Positions 11,091-47,400 of a stretch of DNA of 64,000 nt are shown here, piece after piece (within the stretch, counting starts at the first letter, position 1; every line of letters begins with the position of its first letter). A model generated the notes under the pieces. It saw only the letters and a list, made by a program, of their open reading frames with translations, ran no database searches and had not been told where the DNA came from. Source of the DNA: Mizuhopecten yessoensis (Eukaryota). The position numbers were made by a program, and so were the translations under genes. The stretch lies in contig NW_018408821.1 of assembly GCF_002113885.1 (NCBI RefSeq), forward strand, positions 827,511 through 891,510, written 5' to 3'.

Positions 11091-11545
11091 AAGTTCCAAA
11101 TTTGATCTGGGTATTCACCAGGCCCAAAGTTCCAAATTTGATCTGGGTATTCACCAGGCCCAAAGTTCCAAATTTGATCTTGGTAATCACCAGGCCCAAA
11201 GTTCCAAATTTGATCTTGGTATTCACCAGGCCCAAAGTTCCAAATTTGATCTGGGTAATCACCAGGCCCAAAGTTTCAAATTTGATCTTTGTAATCACTA
11301 GGCCCAAAGTTCCAAATTTGATCTGGGTATTCCCCATGCAGGCCCTCAGTTCCTAATTTTGATCTGGGTATTCCCCATGCAGGCCCTCAGTTCCTAATTT
11401 TGATCTGGTTATTCCCTAGGCCCAAAGTTCCAAATTTGTTATCTGGGTATTCCCACTAGGCCTTAAGTCCCAAATTTGATCTAGCTAGGTATTCCCCTGG
11501 CCCAGAGTTCAAAATTTGATATCTGGGTATACCCCAGGCCCAATC
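11091..11545. repeat. 36-bp minisatellite (AAGTTCCAAATTTGATCTGGGTATTCACCAGGCCCA), ~12 copies
   Basis: Direct tandem repeats that decay towards the 3' end. Explains the 12-aa-periodic ORFs. Confidence 0.95.
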
Positions 11546-11689: not shown

Positions 11690-12438
11690 GTAATGGTCAC
11701 TTTTTGGTATCACACTCCACACACTAAGGGAAAATTAACCAATATTTTTAAAATGTTCTTCTTCAGACTTTTTTGTACTACTATCAAATTCTGTGCATTG
11801 ATGAAAATTCCATCAGCGGCTTTATCAATTTTTCGATTTCGTTACCCCCGGGCCATCCATTCTCGCTTGGGGAGGGGGTAAAGTTGACTCTAGTTTATAT
11901 AGGGAAATAACAATTTTTGGTATAAAATTTGTCCATTTTTAGCAGGAATGATTATGGTGCCAGTTGGCAATTAGACGGTATGAGTAAATAAGATCCTGCC
12001 CCATCCCCAGGGGCTGGATGGGTGGAGCCCAAATGGGGAAAATCAAATGTTAAAAAAACTTCTTCATCAGACTCAGATGTTTTACAAACAAACTATATCA
12101 TGTCCATTTTCAGCAAGAAATAATTCAAACTTGATTGGAATAGTTATAATGAAATTGAAATCGAATAGTATCAGAAAGTAAGATCCTGACCTAGCTATCC
12201 CAGGGGTTGGCCAGGAAGGACAATTGGTTAATTGAGAGTAGATATTATATTTCTCAAAAGCAAAATTATTTATTTGAATAGTTTTTAAAGTTCTAAACCT
12301 TTGGTGACATAACAAGTATTGTATTTCACTCTGTTTACATGTTGATTTCCTCATCACATCTCAACAATAAAATTGAGTACCAGTATCTATAATATACATG
12401 TAACTGAGGTTACCGCTAAGGGCCTTGGGCCTCTTGTT
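11690..12438 (+). mobile_element. HINE/pearl-like interspersed repeat (same family as 1-362)
   Basis: Homologous to 1-362. Ends GAGGTTACCGCTAAGGGCCTTGGGCCTCTTGTT. The 5' boundary is approximate. Confidence 0.6.
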
Positions 12439-12978
12439 AGTTTTTTTGTCAGCGGTGTCGTCATCGGTAGTATCGTCCGAAACAAGGTTTCTTGTGATAA
12501 CTTGAGTTCCCTTAGGTTGATTGAACTCACACCTGGTACACATATTGCATACTAATATAGCTCAGACGAGTTCACATTTCAGAAGTTTTCATGCATTTTT
12601 GGTGGAGTTATGCCCCTTTTATTGCCAAATAAGGGCATTGTGTATTAAATGGAAGAACTACTTTTTTTAATCAATTCCTATCAAATTTTGTATGGTAATG
12701 CTAGAAGCAATAATGTTCAACATATATATATCAGGTTTTTCTGTCAAGTTTCAACTTTCCGTGTTTTTGCATATCACACTTGCCATAGCAACGCTGTTCA
12801 TCGTTTTTGCTGTTAAATTTTGCTTGTTTACACGATAACTCAAGCCAAAACACTTTTCTCAGTAAAAGCGCTGAGCAGGCGACACATCCACTCCTGTGGA
12901 ATTGTTGTGTTAAAAATTCCTCAAAATATTCTTGGCAGTTAATTTGGTCAATATTCAAAGTTAACTGATACATCTAAA

Positions 12979-13994
12979 GGACCTGTTACAGGAACAAAAG
13001 AATTTTGCCCACAAAGCAATTTAACCATTACTGGTTTATATTTGTAGCTCCCTAAGACACGACCCATGAGATATTTCTAAAAAAAATAAAAGGTCCCCAG
13101 GGCCTGTGCTATGAACTATTTAGTGCCGCCTTCCAAAGGTGTACGACAGGGTTCACATTTTGTCCAAAAAACTATCAAAACAATGTTTTACGCTATCAAA
13201 TAATATTATATTATTTACAGTAGGATCTGCTGCAAATTATGAACTCAAATATGTAACAAAAAATTACATAATAAAAAAGTTATAAAATCTTAAAGTCTAA
13301 AAATTTTGGTATTTTCATACACTTTTTTGCTACATCAATTGTTTTACGGAAGTAACACACCAATTTCCGGTTCTTGTACACCAAAAATCTTTTAATATTA
13401 TTTGGTACATTATGTTGAGATACTATAGTGAAAATTTCAGAAAATTTGAGAACCGGTAAATTTGTCATATAAATGTCAAATTGTAGCAACGTCTATTTCC
13501 AAATATAATGCAATAACCTTATGACTATAGTCATGTTTGATCCTTTAACAATATGTCGCACCAATTTATTATCGCAACTGATCAAAGTTTCATCAATAAG
13601 GTCTGCTGCTTATGATGAGCCCAACTATAAAACTATTTGTTGCCAAATAAAAAAGTTATGCAGTCTCTCACACATAAAAGTTTATTATGTTATGTACATT
13701 TTTAGTTGTTTCGCATCTTTACGGAAGTGATAGACACAATTTCGATTTTTGTACACCAACGAATTTTGGATATTATTTGGCACATTATGTTGACTGACGA
13801 TAGTAGAAATTTCGAAAAAATCGGTATTCGGTAAATGTGTCATCTTAAGGTTAATATGGTGTATGACCAATGTCAAAATAAATCTTCAATAACTACAGGT
13901 CAATGCAAGTATTTCATAATTAACCCAAAATCATTCCAATATACTATCAAGGTGGATGATATGGTTTATAGTAGAGTATGACTGTTTAACTAAA
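12979..13994 (+). repeat. left terminal inverted repeat (~1,016 bp)
   Basis: Reverse complement of 16600-17621 with scattered mismatches. The identical 69-aa ORFs at 13280-13489(-) and 17111-17320(+) confirm the symmetry. Confidence 0.95.
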
Positions 13995-14256
13995 CTAGGT
14001 AGTTAAAGGGGGGCATACAGCAAACGTTAGGCAATTTGTCAGAACATTTGGTGTACCAGTATAATATGTTGAAGCTATGTTAATGCATAACATTGGTTCT
14101 TTTTAGGAGAGTTATAGTTTCCAATTCATGGATTGTTGTATTTACTGGTTTTTTTTTAGTTTCACAACACATAGTCAAAATTGGTTATTAAAAACATTTT
14201 TATGAATTTCTACTTTCTAAGTCAATCTTAGGTCATGCTTCTCCTTTTGAATGCAT

Positions 14257-16161
14257 TCACAATATGCAGTCTCTGAATTTGCGAGCTGAAGGCTGGAGCG
14301 TTTTAGCATCTGTTAAATGTGCATAGTATCCTAGATAATACAGTATTGATGCGACATGAGCACACATACCCGATGTTCTCTTTCCTGCAGGACACACACA
14401 ATAGTATGCCTTTACAGGATCCTCTGATGCGTGTTGGTCAAACTCGATCCAGACATTGTATTTTGCTTGCGACCTGTGGCGAGAGTGTATTTGGCCTCGG
14501 AGAAGGTCATCAGCATGTTGGTACACCCATATCTCATAATCGCCCCCATCTGTCTGATGTTCGGTGATATAGCCAGGTGCCAGTTTCAGCTGATATGTAC
14601 CACAAGCCAAAGTCTCCAGGTATTCCAAATCTAGCTTTGGAAACGGGATTTGCGAGGCTTCCAGCTTCTTCCATTCACTCTTTGCTCTGCGGGTCATATT
14701 TGGATCATCAGCTACACGCTTGGCCAACGCATTGTCACTGTCCAAGAGAGACAACATGCGTTTTGCCATTTGTGTATCACGCTGCTCACGAAGTGGATCA
14801 GAACAATATATTGGTCCTCGGAACGCATTCAGACATGCAGTCACAATGCGAACGAGTTTGTCAATAACCGGAACCAGAACGTTTGAAGGAAGTTTTTCTC
14901 TGAACAGAATCCACTTCTTCAAACGCCCATGGTAGGCTTCGACAACCCAACGGGTTTTGGTACATTGGCGATCTTCATTCGCCTGGGAAGCATCTACTTG
15001 TGATTTCCCAGGGGGAAGGAAGGATGGCATTTTTGAATCGTACCCCAACTCGGCTAAAACATCGAGGACATCCCTAAAACCACGATCGACAATAACATTG
15101 TCATGTTCATCAAGCCAAGACTTCAGGAGGTCAAAGTTTTCAATGATAAGTTTAGTTATTGATGCATCATTAACACTTCCATAATACGGTCCGATTGTGT
15201 CCAACACATATCCATCTGGCAACACAATTGACATAAACTTCAGATAATTCGTTTTCTTTTGTCCGCAATATGATGATCTCTGGAATGCATGATGCGAACT
15301 TTTGTTTAGATAGATGTAAGTGCCATCAAGTATGAGACTTGCTTTGTCCCCAAAAAATGCTTTGGTAAACACTGTGTTGTGTGATAAGGCTTCTTTGCGT
15401 GACATATGGTTTGTTCCAAGGTATTGGGGCACAACGGTTACATTCAAAACTTCGATAATCTTGTGGAAATATCTGGACAGTGAGGCTGTTGATAATTTGG
15501 TCAGAACTGACAACTGGTTCCAAGACAGATCAGTTTTTAATTTTGCACAGAAAAAAAGGAGCAAGTCTTCGGAGCACACACCATCAGTAAAAGCTGAAAG
15601 GATGTCGGGTTTGCACATCTCATGCATTTCCATAAACTGCTTTAGAGTCCATTCTGTCCATGCATGGCAATCTGAATCCGACAATGTTTTCAATTGTAGT
15701 TTTGGAGAATTTCCATATTTAGACACGTTATGTATGATCTCAAGAAGATCAGTTATGACCTCGGAACCAATAGCGTTATCAAGTTTCGTTTGCAAGGATG
15801 CCCTATCGACCATAGCTACTTCAGTATCTGGGTGTAAAATGCTTCCGATGATGTGTTTAGGACAAATACACGCATCACGAGGGAACCAAAGCCTGTGATT
15901 TACCATTAGAGAATGTTGCACTTGTTTCGGAATGGTAGCACATGTGTCATTATACTGGAGACATACAGAACATTTGCGATAAGAAGAGGATGCATATTTC
16001 AGATCTGTGATATTCAAGAGGGGCACTGACGGAATAATGGGGATGGCATCAATAACATCTTCCTCATCTTGCAAATCACGACCGGTTTGTTCTTCTCCCT
16101 GAGAATAGTGACTCTCCACAGATGTGCTTGAATGAAGTCTCTTCCTGACACATTTGTCCAT
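14257..16161 (-). CDS. DDE transposase (DDE_Tnp_4/IS5-like) with N-terminal C2CH finger, HTH and C-terminal SWIM finger
   Basis: 634-aa open ORF. Motifs: CSVC...CPKH; HTH-like KLKTDLSWNQLSVLTKLSTASLSRYF; catalytic LILDGT, NDASI, VDRGF and RWVVE; SWIM motif CVCPAGKRTSGMCAH. Confidence 0.92.
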   Translation of the reverse strand: MDKCVRKRLHSSTSVESHYSQGEEQTGRDLQDEEDVIDAIPIIPSVPLLNITDLKYASSSYRKCSVCLQYNDTCATIPKQVQHSLMVNHRLWFPRDACICPKHIIGSILHPDTEVAMVDRASLQTKLDNAIGSEVITDLLEIIHNVSKYGNSPKLQLKTLSDSDCHAWTEWTLKQFMEMHEMCKPDILSAFTDGVCSEDLLLFFCAKLKTDLSWNQLSVLTKLSTASLSRYFHKIIEVLNVTVVPQYLGTNHMSRKEALSHNTVFTKAFFGDKASLILDGTYIYLNKSSHHAFQRSSYCGQKKTNYLKFMSIVLPDGYVLDTIGPYYGSVNDASITKLIIENFDLLKSWLDEHDNVIVDRGFRDVLDVLAELGYDSKMPSFLPPGKSQVDASQANEDRQCTKTRWVVEAYHGRLKKWILFREKLPSNVLVPVIDKLVRIVTACLNAFRGPIYCSDPLREQRDTQMAKRMLSLLDSDNALAKRVADDPNMTRRAKSEWKKLEASQIPFPKLDLEYLETLACGTYQLKLAPGYITEHQTDGGDYEIWVYQHADDLLRGQIHSRHRSQAKYNVWIEFDQHASEDPVKAYYCVCPAGKRTSGMCAHVASILYYLGYYAHLTDAKTLQPSARKFRDCIL

Positions 16162-16599
16162 AACATCTCATGCATATCTTACTGCCATCTTCTACAATCA
16201 GATCTTGGTTTATAAGCATATGTTTCAACCAAGTATTATGCGGGGAGTCCAGCAATCTGGCTGTTTTACCGTCCTTTTTATATCCTTAAATCTTTTCCTA
16301 CATTCTGGCATGATACAGGCATCACCCATGATGAAAGAATAATTTGAAGACTACTAGTATAGCTAGCTATGAATTACAAGATGTGAGTATGTGTGATCAT
16401 GTGTACCTTGAAAACTGAAGTGATCCTATCACCACATCCCTATACCTTGGTATATTTTTCCTAAACTGCATTTCACATAAAAACAATATGATATAAACGG
16501 GGGTTTTATCCAAGGAGGTCAATTACCACAACCTATTTATTTAGGCCATTGTACATATCCTAACTGCAATTCTACCATTAGGATTCCATTTGTAGTCCA

Positions 16600-17621
16600 T
16601 TTAGTTAAACAGTTGATCAAGACTCTGCTATAAACCATATCATCCACCTTGATAGCATATTGGAATGATTTTGGGTTAATTATGAAATACTTGCATTGAC
16701 CTGTAGTTATTGAAGATTTATTTTGACATTGGTCATACACCATATTAACCTTAAGATGACACATTTACACGAATACCGATTTTTTCGAAATTTCTATTAT
16801 CGTCAGTCAACATAATGTGCCAAATCATATCCAAAATATGTTGGTGTACAAAATCCGAAATTGTGTCTATCACTTCCGTAAAGATGCGAAACAACTAAAA
16901 ATGTACATAAAATACTAAACTTTTATGTGTGAGAGATTGCATAACTTTTTTATTTGGCAACATCTAGCTTTATAGTTGGGCTCATCATAAGCAGCAGACC
17001 TTATTAATGAAACTTTGATCAGTTGCGATAATAAATTGGTTCGACATATTGTTAAAGGATCAAACATGACTATAGTCATAAGGTTATTGCATTATATTTG
17101 GAAATAGACGTTGCTACAATTTGACATTTATATGACAAATTTACCGGTTCTCAAATTTTCTGAAATTTTCACTATAGTATCTCAACATAATGTACCAAAT
17201 AATATTAAAAGATTTTTGGTGTACAAGAACCGGAAATTGGTGTGTTACTTCCGTAAAACAATTGATGTAGCAAAAAAGTGTATGAAAATACCAAAATTTT
17301 TAGACTTTAAGATTTTATAACTTTTTTATTATGTAATTTTTTGTTACATATTTGAGTTCATAATTTGCAACAGATCCTACTGTAAATAATATAATATTAT
17401 TTGATAGCGTAAAACATTGTTTTGATAGTTTTTTGGACAAAATGTGAACCCTGTCGTACACCTTTGGAAGGCGGCACTAAATAGTTCGTAGCACAGGCCC
17501 TGGGGACCTTTTTATTTTTTTAAAAATATCTCATAGGTCGTGTCTTAGGGAGCTACAAATATAAACCAGTAATGGTTAAATTGCTTCGTGGGCAAAATTC
17601 TTTTGTTCCTGTAACAGGTCC
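16600..17621 (-). repeat. right terminal inverted repeat (~1,022 bp)
   Basis: Reverse complement of 12979-13994. Confidence 0.95.
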
Positions 17622-18546
17622 TTTTAGATATTGTTCAAAATGGTTTTTTTTTATTAACTCTAAATCTGAGGTTACGTTTCTGTTTTGTTATAGTATGATT
17701 TCACAGACATTAATATTATTCATAGACATGATTTTAAGGACACACTATGTGCAGTTTCACATATATCATATTCACTTTATGTTTTGCGTTGTGTATGTTG
17801 TAGAAGTCAAAATTAAAACAAAATTTGTATATATTGTTGACTGGTCTACACAACACTAAAACAAATTCAGAAATCTGAAGTTGCAATGAAGAATGGATTA
17901 GGATTGATATTGTATGTAATACAGGATTACTGATGTAAGCTCTATGCACAGGTGTGACAGCTGATTACCTTTTAGAAGTATAGTTTTAGATAGTTGTACC
18001 GGATATCGTGGAATGTGGATGACTGAGTGACGTAGATAAACATAAACTACAAGTTCCATTCAAAAATATCTCAATTACATCTCAAGTACAGATTGCATAA
18101 TAGTATGCTCAGCTAGTGCCAAATTCCTGCTGTATTCTCAGCTGGAATAACATTTGTCTTATCATAATGTGTTGTATTAGGCAGATTACTTAACACAATG
18201 CATTAACATAACTCCTGGCAACACAGATTCTTAATATGAATCTAATTTAGGACGGCATTGATAATTAAATAACATCCTGATACTTGGCACATGGGTATTT
18301 TTAAGGTAGAGAAATGATTAATCTACTAGTTTTATTGTTGGGAATAGATCTGTCCAGTATATATATATTTAGAAAAACCTTAGATGTTTTGTTTGTACAT
18401 ATACTATTAGTGACTCATGAATGGATGTATAGCAATGTGAAGTCTAGAGAAGTAATTGGCATTGAAATGTTACAAAATACGACACGGGAATGATGCATAT
18501 AATAACTAGTTTGTTGATGCAGAAAGCCAAACAAAGTAAATATTAA

Positions 18547-31343: not shown

Positions 31344-34300
31344 ATGGCGACATTTACCACATTCGACTATTGCCTCTTTGTGGCAGTGCTTCTTGTTTCC
31401 TTTTTCATCGGGCTGTATTACATGCTGAAAGAAAAATTCGCAAAACAGGAATCTACTTCCGACGATATTTTAATGGGCGGACGAGATATGCCAGTATTTC
31501 CGGTAGCTATGTCTCTAGTTGCTAGCTACATGTCTGCTATTACCGTTTTGGGAGTCCCGACAGAGATGTACGTTTTCGGTACAGAATACTACTTGGTGGC
31601 ATTTTCAGGACTATTGACGTATCCTATCACCTGTTTTGTGTTCCTGCCATTTTTTCATAACTTGGGACTATCAAGTGCATACCAGGTAAATTGTTCGCTC
31701 CTATGGTTTTTTTGCAATGTTATTCACTTTCGTTCTTCATGCTTAATGTTAGATAACTTTTAAGCATCAGTTATCGGACGGGTGAAGCTGAGTCTAAAAT
31801 GGCTTCAGTTGTCGATGGGATGTAAAACAATGCAAAACAAAAATACATGTAATTTAATACTAAATATATCTGTTAAGTTGTCAAATTTATCTTTTTAGTC
31901 GTACACTATTTCGACGCTCTGCAGTTTTTATCACCATATAAATGACCATATTAATTGTACCCGTAATTAGTCAAGTGCCGATTAATGTCCATAGGCCTCT
32001 TGTTTTTCGAGTACATATAAATATAGGGGTATTTTGCAACACAATGGGATAATCTCTCATGTGTTATATAGTCAGAGCACACGGGCACGCAACTACTATC
32101 AATATTGATCTTGTATTAGGTTTTCAGTCGCTAACGTACCCAGCGACTGAAAGCCTAAAACAAGATCAGTATTGATAGTAGTTGCATGTCCCTGTGGTCA
32201 GAGATAACTTAATATCAACACTAATACATTGCAGTACCTTGAACTCCGATTCAACAGTTGGACACGATATCTTGCAGCATTGATCTTTGCCATTGAAATG
32301 GTAAGTTGATACTTTCTTCGAATGTTATAGTTTTGCACGGTAAAACGCAATAATGCTGCATCTAGTAATGATACTAAAGCGGGCCAGACGTCATGTTTGC
32401 CTTTTCTTGGTACCGCTGGTCGTAACGTTTTAACGGACTCTTCAGTTTAGCCCCTCTCAAGATTTGTAACAGGACCAAAGAGAAGCAAAAATATTGGAAA
32501 CGATACCCATCCACACCATTAAGCTGTATAATTTTAAATTAATAGAATCGTATGGATTAAGAGGACGTCCTCACTGAATACACACTGTTAAAGCACAAGA
32601 ACGCTTTTATGGATAACGATTTAGTTGGTATCGCTTTTGTTTACTTGGGGGCTTCATAAAACTGTTTAGTTTGTTTTTCGTATCCATGGTTCACGTTATT
32701 TTTCATATCTGCGTTTGAGCTTCACCGTTGACACCTTGGTATATACCATTCTCCTATGTGTTGACACCGTGGTATAAACCATGTTTCTGTGTTGACACCG
32801 TGAGGTGTTATATACCATGTTCCTGTGTGTTGACACCGTGGTATATATCTTGTTCCTGCCTGTGTGTTGACACCGTGGTATATATCATGTTCCAGTGTGT
32901 TGACATCGTGGTATATATCCTGTTACTGTGTGTTGATACCATGGAATATACCATGTTCCTGTGTGTTGACACCGTGGTATATACAATGTTTCATGTTCCA
33001 GTGTGTTGACATCGTGGTATATATCATGTTTCTTTAAGTGCCATTGTTTTTACCAAACAGGTTGGCTAGGTATCGATACTAACACTTTATGTCTAAATCA
33101 TAATATTGTATATACTTGTTTCAGGTGCTGTATATGGCTGTTGTGTTATATGCTCCAGCGCTTGCTTTAAATCAAGGTGAGACATATGTTTAGGTTTAGG
33201 TTTCATTCCTTTTTGTTGAATATATTTTTATTGATAAATTATCTGTAAAATAGTTTTCCGAGTTTAAAAAGGAAAGGGAGATCTCCTATCGTTATCTGTC
33301 GGTAAAACCATCAAATTATTATCAAACAGTCCAGATTTTTAGGACTACACAATTATTAAAGGCGAGATTATAACGAATGTCCTTAATGCTAGGGTCGATA
33401 GAATCAGGTTCAAATGTATCATTTATATTATCTAGCATTTGATGTCAGTTTTATCTGTTCCAGTGACTGGCCTTTCACTATCGGGGTCTATATTAAGTGT
33501 CGGTGCTGTAGTAACATTTTATACGTCTATGGTAAGTCTAACGTCAACTGTGAGGAGAGGAGGTGTAAGTTTTGGATATCAATAAATAATATGTTTACAA
33601 AGTGAGGAAACCTGTTTATATATATAGCAAGTCAATGTAAAAAGCAAAGCACATTTTATTTTTAATGAACCACATGCAAGACCATTTCGTCAATTTGGGA
33701 CTTATTAGTTGTAACAATGGTCAAAAGAATGAATATATTGTTTAAAATGTTTAGAAATTAGCATGTATGCAGAAACACAGCAAAAGCGGAAAGCCTTTAA
33801 TCCCTTAGAGAAAAACAAAGCATTAATCATAAAGTGCAATAGTTATCATCCAAATTGAAGAACTTTGTATAGCCCACTTAATATTATTGCTTTTGTATCG
33901 CCCTTGAATGGTCATGACATGCTTAGAAAATCTGCTAATAAGAGTAACGTTATAGGGAGGATTACGTGCCGTGCTGTGGACGGACACGTTCCAAACATTT
34001 GTCGTTGTTGGCGGTCTCGTTGGTATCATTGCTATCGGCTGCACGAAGTTCGGTGGAATTGGGGAGGTGTGGAACATCGCACAGCAAGGAGGCAGAATAC
34101 AGTTCTTCAAGTACGTATAGTGTGTAAAACATTACACAAACAATTCAGTTATTTGCTAGCAATTCATTGATACTCGTAATTGTTGACTCGGACTACGATT
34201 CTGACGTTCCTGATTAATTAGAAATGAAACTACATTAACCTTTGCGTATGTACACTGTCTAGATACCTTACACGTTCGTCTTCAGACTATTTTATACTGG

Positions 34301-44429: not shown

Positions 44430-47400
44430 ATGGATGTTATTACTGAGGCAAGTTTAAAAACCTGCAAGAAGGTATGTGAACTCTGTGATGGAGAGCAGAT
44501 TGGATCATTTGTTGCGGTAGACTATGTGCTATTTGCAGCAGTCCTAGTCGTTTCGGCTCTTATAGGAGTTTTCTACATGGTCAAGGAATACCGTGCGACG
44601 AAACAAGCCACAGCCGAAGACGTTCTGATGGGTGGAAGGGACATAGGTATATTTCCCATAGCCATGTCGCTGATGGCTAGTTTCATGTCAGCTATCACAG
44701 TGCTGGGGACACCGACGGAGATGTACAATAACAATACCAGTTATTGGATTGCAGGAAACGTCATCATCATTACAACAATACTAACAAATCATGTGTTTCT
44801 TCCTTTTTTCCATAACTTGAACTTAACCAGCGCATACGAGGTAAGCATCAAATATTTGTACTATTAGATTGACCATGCAAACGACTTTCCTCTTATTTAA
44901 TAGGAATTATCCCAAACGACCTTGACCCTTGTTATCAATACATACATAAAACCTTGCTTTGTTTGTTACTTAACCCTTATTCCCCACCTAGTATAACATT
45001 CAATGAAACATAATTTCATCCATCCATGTCATCATGATACATGAAGCAACATAAATGATGCATAATTATGATGTTGAAATTACCACCACGCCCAATTTGA
45101 ATGTACTGTTTTTGACGGTCTTTTTTTTTACCAGTAATGAACACAATATGTATGATGTATGATTAAAGTTATACGGATTTCGTTGATTTTTTGTGTGAAA
45201 TACCACTGTTTCTTAGCATGCGTGCACTTCACGTCCGTTCATTGATTTATATCCACAAGGAAATGTGGTGTACAGATTAAAATTAATGTTAAGTTAGGAA
45301 ACATGATGCAAAAGGTTAAATTGATTTCAGATTTATAGGTTTGGCACATAGACTACAATTCCTTTAAGTTAAAAATAAATAAAGCTAGACAGAGGTGTAT
45401 AGACAACAGGGACACTTTAAGATACCTGTATATCTTTTGTAGCTGAAATGTATACGTCTCTACAACATACTACTGTGTTGTGTTATAGTTTAAATGTATA
45501 CGTCTCTACAACATATTGCTGTGTTGTGTTATAATTTAAATGTATACGTCTCTACGACATATTACTGTGTTGTGTTATAATTTAAATGTATACGTCTCTA
45601 CAACATATTACTGTGTTGTGTTATAATTTAAATTTTACTCGATTAGAGAAGTATGTTTGTAATAATTATAAACCAATTAGGTTTGTGACTTTGTTCATCA
45701 AGAAATATGATCGGAGAATAACAACTGACCAATAAGAACTTCATCTCTAAGTATAAGATTTCTAAATTCAAAAGAAAACGAAAAGTTTCATTGAATTTCC
45801 ATTGAATGCGTACAATTGTCTCCATTTTGTCTCCCTCCACATTGCGGACATTAACGTTTGGATTATTACTAAAACTGATGTGTCATATTCAAGTTTCGAC
45901 ACATTAATTAAGATTATCTCTGGAGTTGCTATCTTATCTATAATAAATACAGTACTTCGGGTCCCTTTGATCCATTTAGCAACGATAGAAATATTTTTTA
46001 AATACATTTTACAGCCCATCAAATTGCTATGGAAAGAATAACGCAAAACATCGCACATTGATTTATTTTAACGTAATTCGTTGGTCTCAGCTGACAATGT
46101 TCGATATTATATTTTTCATCCTTGACCAATTGTTACATATAAAGTATCAATTCTTTATCGCTCTTGATGAATGTAAGATTTTGTATCTATTTGGTATTAA
46201 TTTATTCATACATAAAGTCACCCATTAACATTAAATATCAAAACATTTATAAAACGTCCTTTTGTATTGATTAAGATGTGAGTCTTGAAATCGTCCTTTT
46301 GTGTTGACGGTGTGGCACATTGATTGTGTATATAACTTCAGACAGGAAACTATTTGGATTCACATTTCTCCTATCGGATTTACTTTATTTTGCTTCCATT
46401 TTACTGTTTAAGATCACACAAAACTTTAAGTTTTGTGCAATTGCTATCTGGGTAACCGAGTAGAGTGCTCTTTATAACGCCATCTGTTAACTCGTATCGA
46501 TCTGCTACAGGATGTTTTTGATTAATAGTCAATCCATCAAATGCAAATAGCACTATCACTGTTATTATCAGAGTGTGTTTCGGTGACCAAATACCTTCTT
46601 ATCTACATTACCCTTTTCTTTAATGGAATGAATTCAAATCGTTATTTTCAGTAATATTGGTTAGGTTCGTCTAAGGTTTACTTCTTCACGACAGGTTATT
46701 TTCTATTCAAATTATATCAAATTCAAAATTAAACTGCATGTTTTTGAACAGAAATTTAAAACGATTATCTAAATACCTTGCACACGAAATAAAGTGAAAA
46801 TCTAAAAATAAAGCGAGTTTTAAAAGTTTGATTAATGGTTAGTTCAGGTAAATGACTATGTGTTGACAACCTAGTCTCAGCATGTTTTTGATATCATTAA
46901 CGAATCTATTATGTTGTGAAACATTTTTAGCTTTATTGAAAAACTGGCAACCTTTTTTGTTTGTAAACCAAGTGATTTGTTTTCTGATACGTAAAACCCG
47001 TAAACATCTTCAATATTCTCAGGAATCAAACTTATTATTTAATTGTTATTTCTGTTTAAAGAGACTGTGTCAAAGACAGTGAATGATTCAATGTCTTCAT
47101 GGACTTATATGTCAGTAACTTCAACTATTGATTATCTTATAACCAATGATATCTTCACGAGTGCAAACTCATTTATTACCAGAGGACAACACAGTAGACC
47201 TCTCAACATACTTTGCATGTGCATCAGTTATAAACGATAATGATAGCAACATCAAATGTTCAAGATTTATACCGTAATGTGTTCTACTCTGCCAATGCAT
47301 ATGAACAGCATTGTACATGGAACATTTCTGCATATATAATTGTGTTATTACGAAAGTATTTAAGCATGTGAGTATGTGTGCTAGGCGTGTAGATATCTAT

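Follow-up and report, generated by a model that had tools for sequence, protein, structure and literature searches.

Results

The window analysed here is a 64,000-nucleotide stretch of the Mizuhopecten yessoensis genome (NCBI RefSeq assembly GCF_002113885.1, contig NW_018408821.1, positions 827,511 to 891,510; C5494:827511-891510 in our numbering). At 12979-17621 it carries a DNA transposon of 4,643 bp, running from GG (12979) to CC (17621), which is inserted bluntly between AAA and TTT of the host with no target-site duplication (TSD). We assign it, with a probability of about 0.9, to the Spy group of the PIF/Harbinger-ISL2EU-Spy (PHIS) superfamily, as a family with long terminal inverted repeats (TIRs) that inserts at AAA/TTT without a TSD (a slash within a sequence marks the point of insertion). 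The features of the locus, including its transposase open reading frame (ORF) with a helix-turn-helix (HTH) motif, are as follows.

12976..12978, no strand: host AAA, left half of the target, outside the element and present in the empty allele of sequencing run X16
12979..13994, plus strand: left TIR, 1,016 nt, begins GGACCTGTTACAGG, 97% complementary to 16600-17621
13218..13479, plus strand: copy 1 of the ~265-nt direct TIR subrepeat (TIR positions 240-501)
13594..13854, plus strand: copy 2 of the TIR subrepeat (TIR positions 616-876)
14257..16161, minus strand: transposase ORF, 634 aa, with C2CH finger, HTH, DDE core and SWIM
14615..16692, no strand: segment deleted in 2,937-bp derivatives (joint in runs X13 and X16; alignment of the C186 copy)
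16162..16329, minus strand: remnant of the ancestral N-terminus (three-frame translation; tblastn with the N-terminus of a sister family; DNA alignment to the C770 copy)
16600..17621, minus strand: right TIR, 1,022 nt, terminates in CCTGTAACAGGTCC (BLAST and repeat finder)
17622..17624, no strand: host TTT, right half of the target, outside the element (empty alleles and paralogous empty sites)

A repeat finder aligned inverted arms at 12976-13830/16770-17624 (855 nt, 98%) and 13831-13977/16622-16768 (147 nt, 99%), and BLAST paired 12979-13994 with 16600-17621 (1,016 against 1,022 nt, 97% identity, 22-25 mismatches and 6-8 gap positions). Together the TIRs make up 43.9% of the element, in agreement with an original prediction, made from the sequence alone, of ~1-kb TIRs covering ~44%. 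The same prediction spoke of perfect terminal symmetry, which was slightly generous for arms that BLAST finds 97% identical, although the long inverted arms themselves are confirmed. Within each TIR lie two diverged direct subrepeats of ~265 bp (240-501 and 616-876, 69% identical, period ~375).

Family copies were sought across the genome (988 Mb, 82,659 contigs). The first 322 nt of the element gave at least 314 candidate matches, the best 40 of which were 95-100% identical, and eight copies were paired on their contigs: the 4,643-bp window copy, six of 2,869-2,973 bp and one of 1,091 bp. When the flanks of family termini were tabulated, as had been proposed, AAA lay directly outside GGACCTG at each of the 31 distinct family ends examined, where the element starts with GGACCTGTTACAGG, and position -4 was variable. 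Beyond AAA and TTT, no direct flanking repeat was present in the eight paired copies.

Empty alleles were looked for among contigs from four public runs of the same organism, placed on window 12400-18200. In run X16 a 1,051-nt contig connects window 12978 to 17623 with a single A in between, the empty allele being CATCTAAA-A-TTTAGATA and the filled allele CATCTAAA followed by the element and TTTTAGATA. Because seven bases run from CATCT to TAGATA in both alleles, which are thus equal in length here, nothing was duplicated or lost at the window site. The empty site had been predicted to read CATCTAAATTTTAGATA; its AAA, its TTT and its total length are kept, but the X16 contig reads CATCTAAAATTTAGATA, one A/T different.

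Other insertions give the same result from paralogous sequence. Both flanks of the C690 copy match a host repeat with ~3,000 candidates and abut base to base in five uninterrupted copies of that repeat, three of which read GTCCAAA/TTTGGTAT, the filled site minus the element. For the C5167 copy, six paralogous empty sites read TATATCAAA/TTT(T)CTGTTACC, i.e. TTT(T)CTG.... On the C4672 scaffold (L012, C4672:62700-66022), a flank with the element start is followed by an N gap of 417 and then by the flank again, in a 98.3% copy that continues directly into TTTCATATG with no element; the scaffold probably contains both alleles, filled and empty, of one heterozygous insertion, placed in tandem by the assembly. 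Because of the empty sites in X16 and at C690, C5167 and C4672, AAA and TTT are host-derived and integration is exact and duplication-free. The predicted TSD-less insertion at AAA/TTT is therefore upheld by the 31 of 31 AAA ends, one orthologous empty allele and paralogous empty sites at two loci.

Several further searches for empty sites returned nothing usable. With the left flank of the window as query, no haplotig or paralogous empty site was found, this flank being a separate repeat that ends ~70 bp before the insertion; the flanks of the C5318, C186 and C4030 copies were single-copy or matched short unrelated repeats only; at the C2332 copy the host repeat ends at the junction and is uninformative on the empty site; and comparing all masked loci with one another brought up no direct empty site either. 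The left-flank repeat is itself abundant: window 12473-12912 is a copy of a ~440-bp repeat (839 candidates, 84-89% identity) that stops ~65-70 bp short of the insertion point.

In the 634-aa ORF, Pfam recognises DDE_Tnp_4 (7.5e-20) and DDE_Tnp_1 (5.4e-07), with HTH_Tnp_4 (0.0042, residues 196-241) and SWIM (0.021) both falling short of the Pfam cut-offs. The catalytic triad D279, D359 and E408 has the spacing D(79)D(48)E, and the SWIM residues follow the pattern C588-x-C590-x9-C600-x-H602. In an alignment of 36 homologues (27-66% identity), the DDE triad, C100 and the SWIM residues C588, C590, C600 and H602 are invariant, and the C2CH residues C64, C67 and H103 are conserved in at least 90%. 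Pfam detects DDE_Tnp_4 in 36 of 36 homologues and HTH_Tnp_4 in 19 of 36, the latter scoring 3.4e-7 in the protein of the sister family described below. Pfam THAP matches none of the 36, and the C2CH finger therefore counts as a conserved signature but not as a recognised THAP domain. The protein as modelled with AlphaFold2 (mean predicted local distance difference test score, pLDDT, 86; predicted template modelling score, pTM, 0.73) is helical at 162-270, and its Foldseek matches in the PDB are DDE transposases and integrases only (piggyBac, Mos1, Tn5, ISCth4 and retroviral, E ~1e-3); a PDB sequence search with the window protein gave no match. There is no second gene of the YqaJ or Myb/SANT kind among ORFs of at least 80 aa in the element, since those remaining are only antisense overlaps of the transposase ORF.

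A single ORF joining C2CH, HTH, DDE and SWIM, with no second gene, had been predicted and all of this was found, but the N-terminus is frameshifted and the first finger cut off. A CxxxxC...CxxC finger opens the intact sister-family protein and most homologues; in the window, three-frame translation places the ~55 N-terminal residues that contain it ahead of the ORF, spread over two other frames, with the ancestral ATG at 16329. Relative to the C770 copy, the window carries a 1-nt deletion in an A-run near 16275-16280 and a 1-nt insertion near 16154-16155, and it is because these two frameshifts displace the N-terminus that the 634-aa ORF begins at an internal Met. The C770 copy is truncated, and a stop codon interrupts its first finger; in the C1128 copy, a gap and a duplication accompany a truncated end. 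The population does contain copies that are not alike at the first frameshift site, as a +T variant at 16274, which alters the length of the 16275-16279 run, occurs in run X13. The depth of the ORF against unique flank, taken from rough contig depths, suggests ~3-6 autonomous-type copies per individual.

Most of the family is of another form. In the alignment of the C186 copy, the 2,937-bp form lacks 14615-16692 of the full element and carries an additional 372-bp insert just 3' of the ORF stop codon, and the deletion joint (14614 to 16693) occurs in runs X13 and X16 at a depth of 114-360. Again from rough contig depths, the TIRs suggest copies in the hundreds, and internal-deletion derivatives of 2.9 kb, roughly a hundred or more, now make up most of the family. 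These non-autonomous copies form at least two subfamilies that are ~95% alike. Over 1.8 kb, members of one subfamily that lie at different loci and between different flanks share 99.2-100% identity. Near-identical derivatives at different loci, together with the segregating window insertion, show very recent mobilisation. The family had been called young, which is borne out mainly by these two observations. As a side observation, the autonomous copy lacks the 372-bp insert (e.g. L005:196-567), which at least five loci carry in 100% identical form; it may be a piece of another repeat, since ~89 bp align at 93% with sequence flanking an unrelated locus (L042:4719-4807).

A second, sister family is present in the same genome. 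Its elements measure 4,078 bp, end in TIRs of ~13 nt (GGGCCTGTTTCC...) and carry an intact ORF of 678 aa, whose transposase has the same domain order as the window protein and 52-53% identity to it. A first look gave 1,548 candidates, and AAA flanks the element at 50-51 of 52 ends. The termini of the two families are related, 9 of the first 12 bases being common to both (GGGCCTGTTTCC and GGACCTGTTACA). The sister family combines its short TIRs and intact ORF with dozens of copies that are 99.7-99.9% identical, in contrast to the window family, where the TIRs are 1 kb long, the assembly has no intact ORF and most copies are 2.9-kb deletion derivatives. Position -4 is low in A in both: the window as a whole is 32% A, yet A takes this position at 6 of 31 window-family ends and 5 of 52 sister-family ends; a preference of the enzyme for exactly three A's, BAAA/TTTV, is suggested. 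Two sister copies stand apart. L047 (C628) has AAATTT before and TTT after the element, ..CACAAATTT/GGGCC...GGCCC/TTTACATGG, perhaps because TTT was duplicated in a rare, staggered integration; L037 has TAA instead of AAA at its left end.

The nearest protein (P0001/P0067, 66% identity) comes from a marine metagenome contig. Its element has a right end ...GGGCAAAATT...AGGTCC/TTT and a truncated left end that already lies within the inverted arm, and because of this arm the long-TIR design seems to be common to the nearest relative. In a quick tree of the 36 homologues, the window protein and P0001/P0067 pair with full support inside a clade that includes the sister family, and rotifer proteins adjoin this clade. 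The cluster of protein P0003, one of eukaryotic Spy-like transposases, contains a 636-aa member that is filed at NCBI under a bacterial metagenome-assembled genome (Candidatus Thiodiazotropha sp., MEW8544654.1), probably host DNA binned into a symbiont genome.

Discussion

Groups within the PHIS superfamily are set by TSD in the paper that defined it. Spy elements were described in 2014 as having an AAA/TTT target without a TSD, a single ORF with an HTH, TIRs of 9-1,474 bp, terminal GGANNNNG and the catalytic signature D(79-80)D(44-62)E, in hosts that include oyster, Hydra, rotifer, insects and mites (Han et al., 2014; PMC4122938). Insertion geometry, domain content and DDE spacing, all observed here, tie the window element to this group: its empty sites keep AAA and TTT, its single transposase ORF has an HTH ahead of the catalytic core, the D(79)D(48)E spacing fits the published signature, and its TIRs of 1,016 and 1,022 nt fall in the published range (PMC4122938). 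The Spy-type classification of the original prediction stands on these grounds. Likeness extends to the GGA... termini, the many non-autonomous derivatives and the occurrence in bivalves, rotifers and insects. No subrepeats were seen in the long TIRs of the 2014 elements (PMC4122938), whereas each window TIR carries two of ~265 bp.

Several points weigh against this assignment. The X16 empty allele is one base off at the junction (AAAATTT against AAA+TTTT; A instead of T at 17622). Its haplotype shows 27 further differences over ~724 nt and is ~3.7% diverged from the reference; the simplest reading of 17622 is a standing single-nucleotide polymorphism, and with so divergent a haplotype it is unlikely to be the footprint of a recent excision. 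Each of the three autonomous-type copies in the assembly is defective and there is no intact family transposase there, which leaves the current autonomy of the long-TIR family unproven. The window terminus is GGACCTGT, with G at position 7, against GGANNNNG in Spy, with G at position 8; the sister family has GGGCCTGT. Most Spy transposases have no zinc fingers (Han et al., 2014; PMC4122938), whereas the window clade has conserved C2CH and SWIM fingers, an ISL2EU-like trait: its proteins combine N-terminal Cys fingers (C4 plus C2CH) with an invariant C-terminal SWIM finger, and the word SWIM is absent from the main text of both Spy papers (PMC4122938, PMC11304231). Membership of the Spy clade rests on the insertion signature, DDE spacing and architecture.

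The closest alternatives are groups that do duplicate their target. ISL2EU, the sister group of Spy in published trees, shares with the window element a DDE_Tnp_4-type transposase, GG termini and a zinc finger N-terminal to the HTH (PMC4122938), and oyster Spy elements were originally filed as ISL2EU; PIF/Harbinger shares the DDE_Tnp_4 catalytic and HTH_Tnp_4 domains, which are common to the whole superfamily, and A/T-rich targets. A 2-bp AT duplication (ISL2EU) or a 3-bp TWA duplication (PIF/Harbinger) might then be hidden in A/T-rich flanks. This is very unlikely, as filled and empty sites are equal in length (7 nt at the window locus, exact abutment in the paralogues), and the element has neither the YqaJ-exonuclease ORF that usually accompanies ISL2EU nor the second, Myb/SANT protein that PIF/Harbinger needs, with Pfam THAP at 0 of 36 homologues. 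It is harder still to believe that AAA and TTT are the outermost TIR bases of an element AAAGG...CCTTT that enters arbitrary sites without duplication. The two triplets are reverse-complementary, so that the repeat finder extends the arms through both, and they are present at every family end; however, the reading is refuted by empty sites at three independent loci, in which both are retained, and two ends within the 99.9%-identical sister family bear other bases than AAA, which would be unexpected for element sequence.

A different question is whether the family is a dead relic, immobile and owing its copy similarity to segmental duplication or assembly redundancy. The three defective autonomous-type copies, the 3% difference between the window arms and the 94-96% similarity of most copies would suit such a history, but we consider it improbable: copies 99.9-100% identical over 1.8 kb sit on different contigs with different flanks, the window insertion is missing from another individual, and reads of another individual show a length variant of the 16275-16279 run, a frameshift site of the window.

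Under the Spy reading, the transposase, with its zinc fingers, HTH, RNase-H-like DDE core and SWIM, would recognise the GGACCTG... ends, and the excised element would integrate exactly between AAA and TTT of AAATTT. Both strand transfers would take place opposite each other, unstaggered, and it is this geometry that we propose as the reason for the missing TSD; blunt cleavage and joining are suggested by published Spy work. The window copy is of the autonomous type and still segregates, its coding capacity damaged by the two frameshifts that remove the first zinc finger. Given derivatives 99-100% identical at separate loci, a working source of transposase must have existed very recently, and it could be an intact copy outside the assembly, the truncated protein or the highly active, 53%-identical sister family. 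One speculative picture, which we hold to be doubtful, is a long-TIR family with no transposase of its own whose 2.9-kb derivatives are mobilised in trans by the sister family. The TIR subrepeats would then act as extra transposase-binding sites competing for the enzyme, making the family a parasite of a parasite. In a wider version of this speculation, the invariant C-terminal SWIM finger could be what reads AAATTT and enforces blunt integration.

Elements of this kind have been put to work: cgSpy and cvSpy, the latter from oyster, transposed in human cells into AAATTT without a TSD (Diaby et al., 2024; PMC11304231). The tool and mechanistic interest claimed for the locus is thus real for Spy in general, but activity and tool use were already published. 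Likewise, the family is new, as the original prediction had supposed possible, but Spy has been known since 2014 and a fragmentary Miye-Spy is already listed: Table S1 of PMC11304231 has fragmentary scallop entries, Miye-Spy and Pema-Spy, with neither TIRs nor target. Because kilobase TIRs, Spy activity and tool use had all been published, novelty and interest were overrated. The element is a new family within the known Spy kind and its mechanism is not new; what is new here are the TIR subrepeats, the conservation of C2CH and SWIM across 36 homologues and the 99-100% identical 2.9-kb derivatives.

Among eukaryotic DDE cut-and-paste transposons, Spy elements alone are known to integrate without a TSD, and cgSpy is under development as a gene-transfer tool. 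The locus leaves the known Spy mechanism unchanged and supplies a documented natural case, a segregating insertion plus its empty allele. It also adds a long-TIR family with internal subrepeats and a branch in which zinc-finger and SWIM modules are conserved. The pair of related families, one intact and the other defective yet recently mobile, is usable for questions of end recognition and cross-mobilisation.

Other features of the window

A tandem array of short period lies at about 11091-11543 of the window. Further downstream, 31344-31763 and 44430-44867 are two similar plus-strand ORFs; they look like the first exons of sodium/solute symporter (SLC5-like) genes that arose by tandem duplication.

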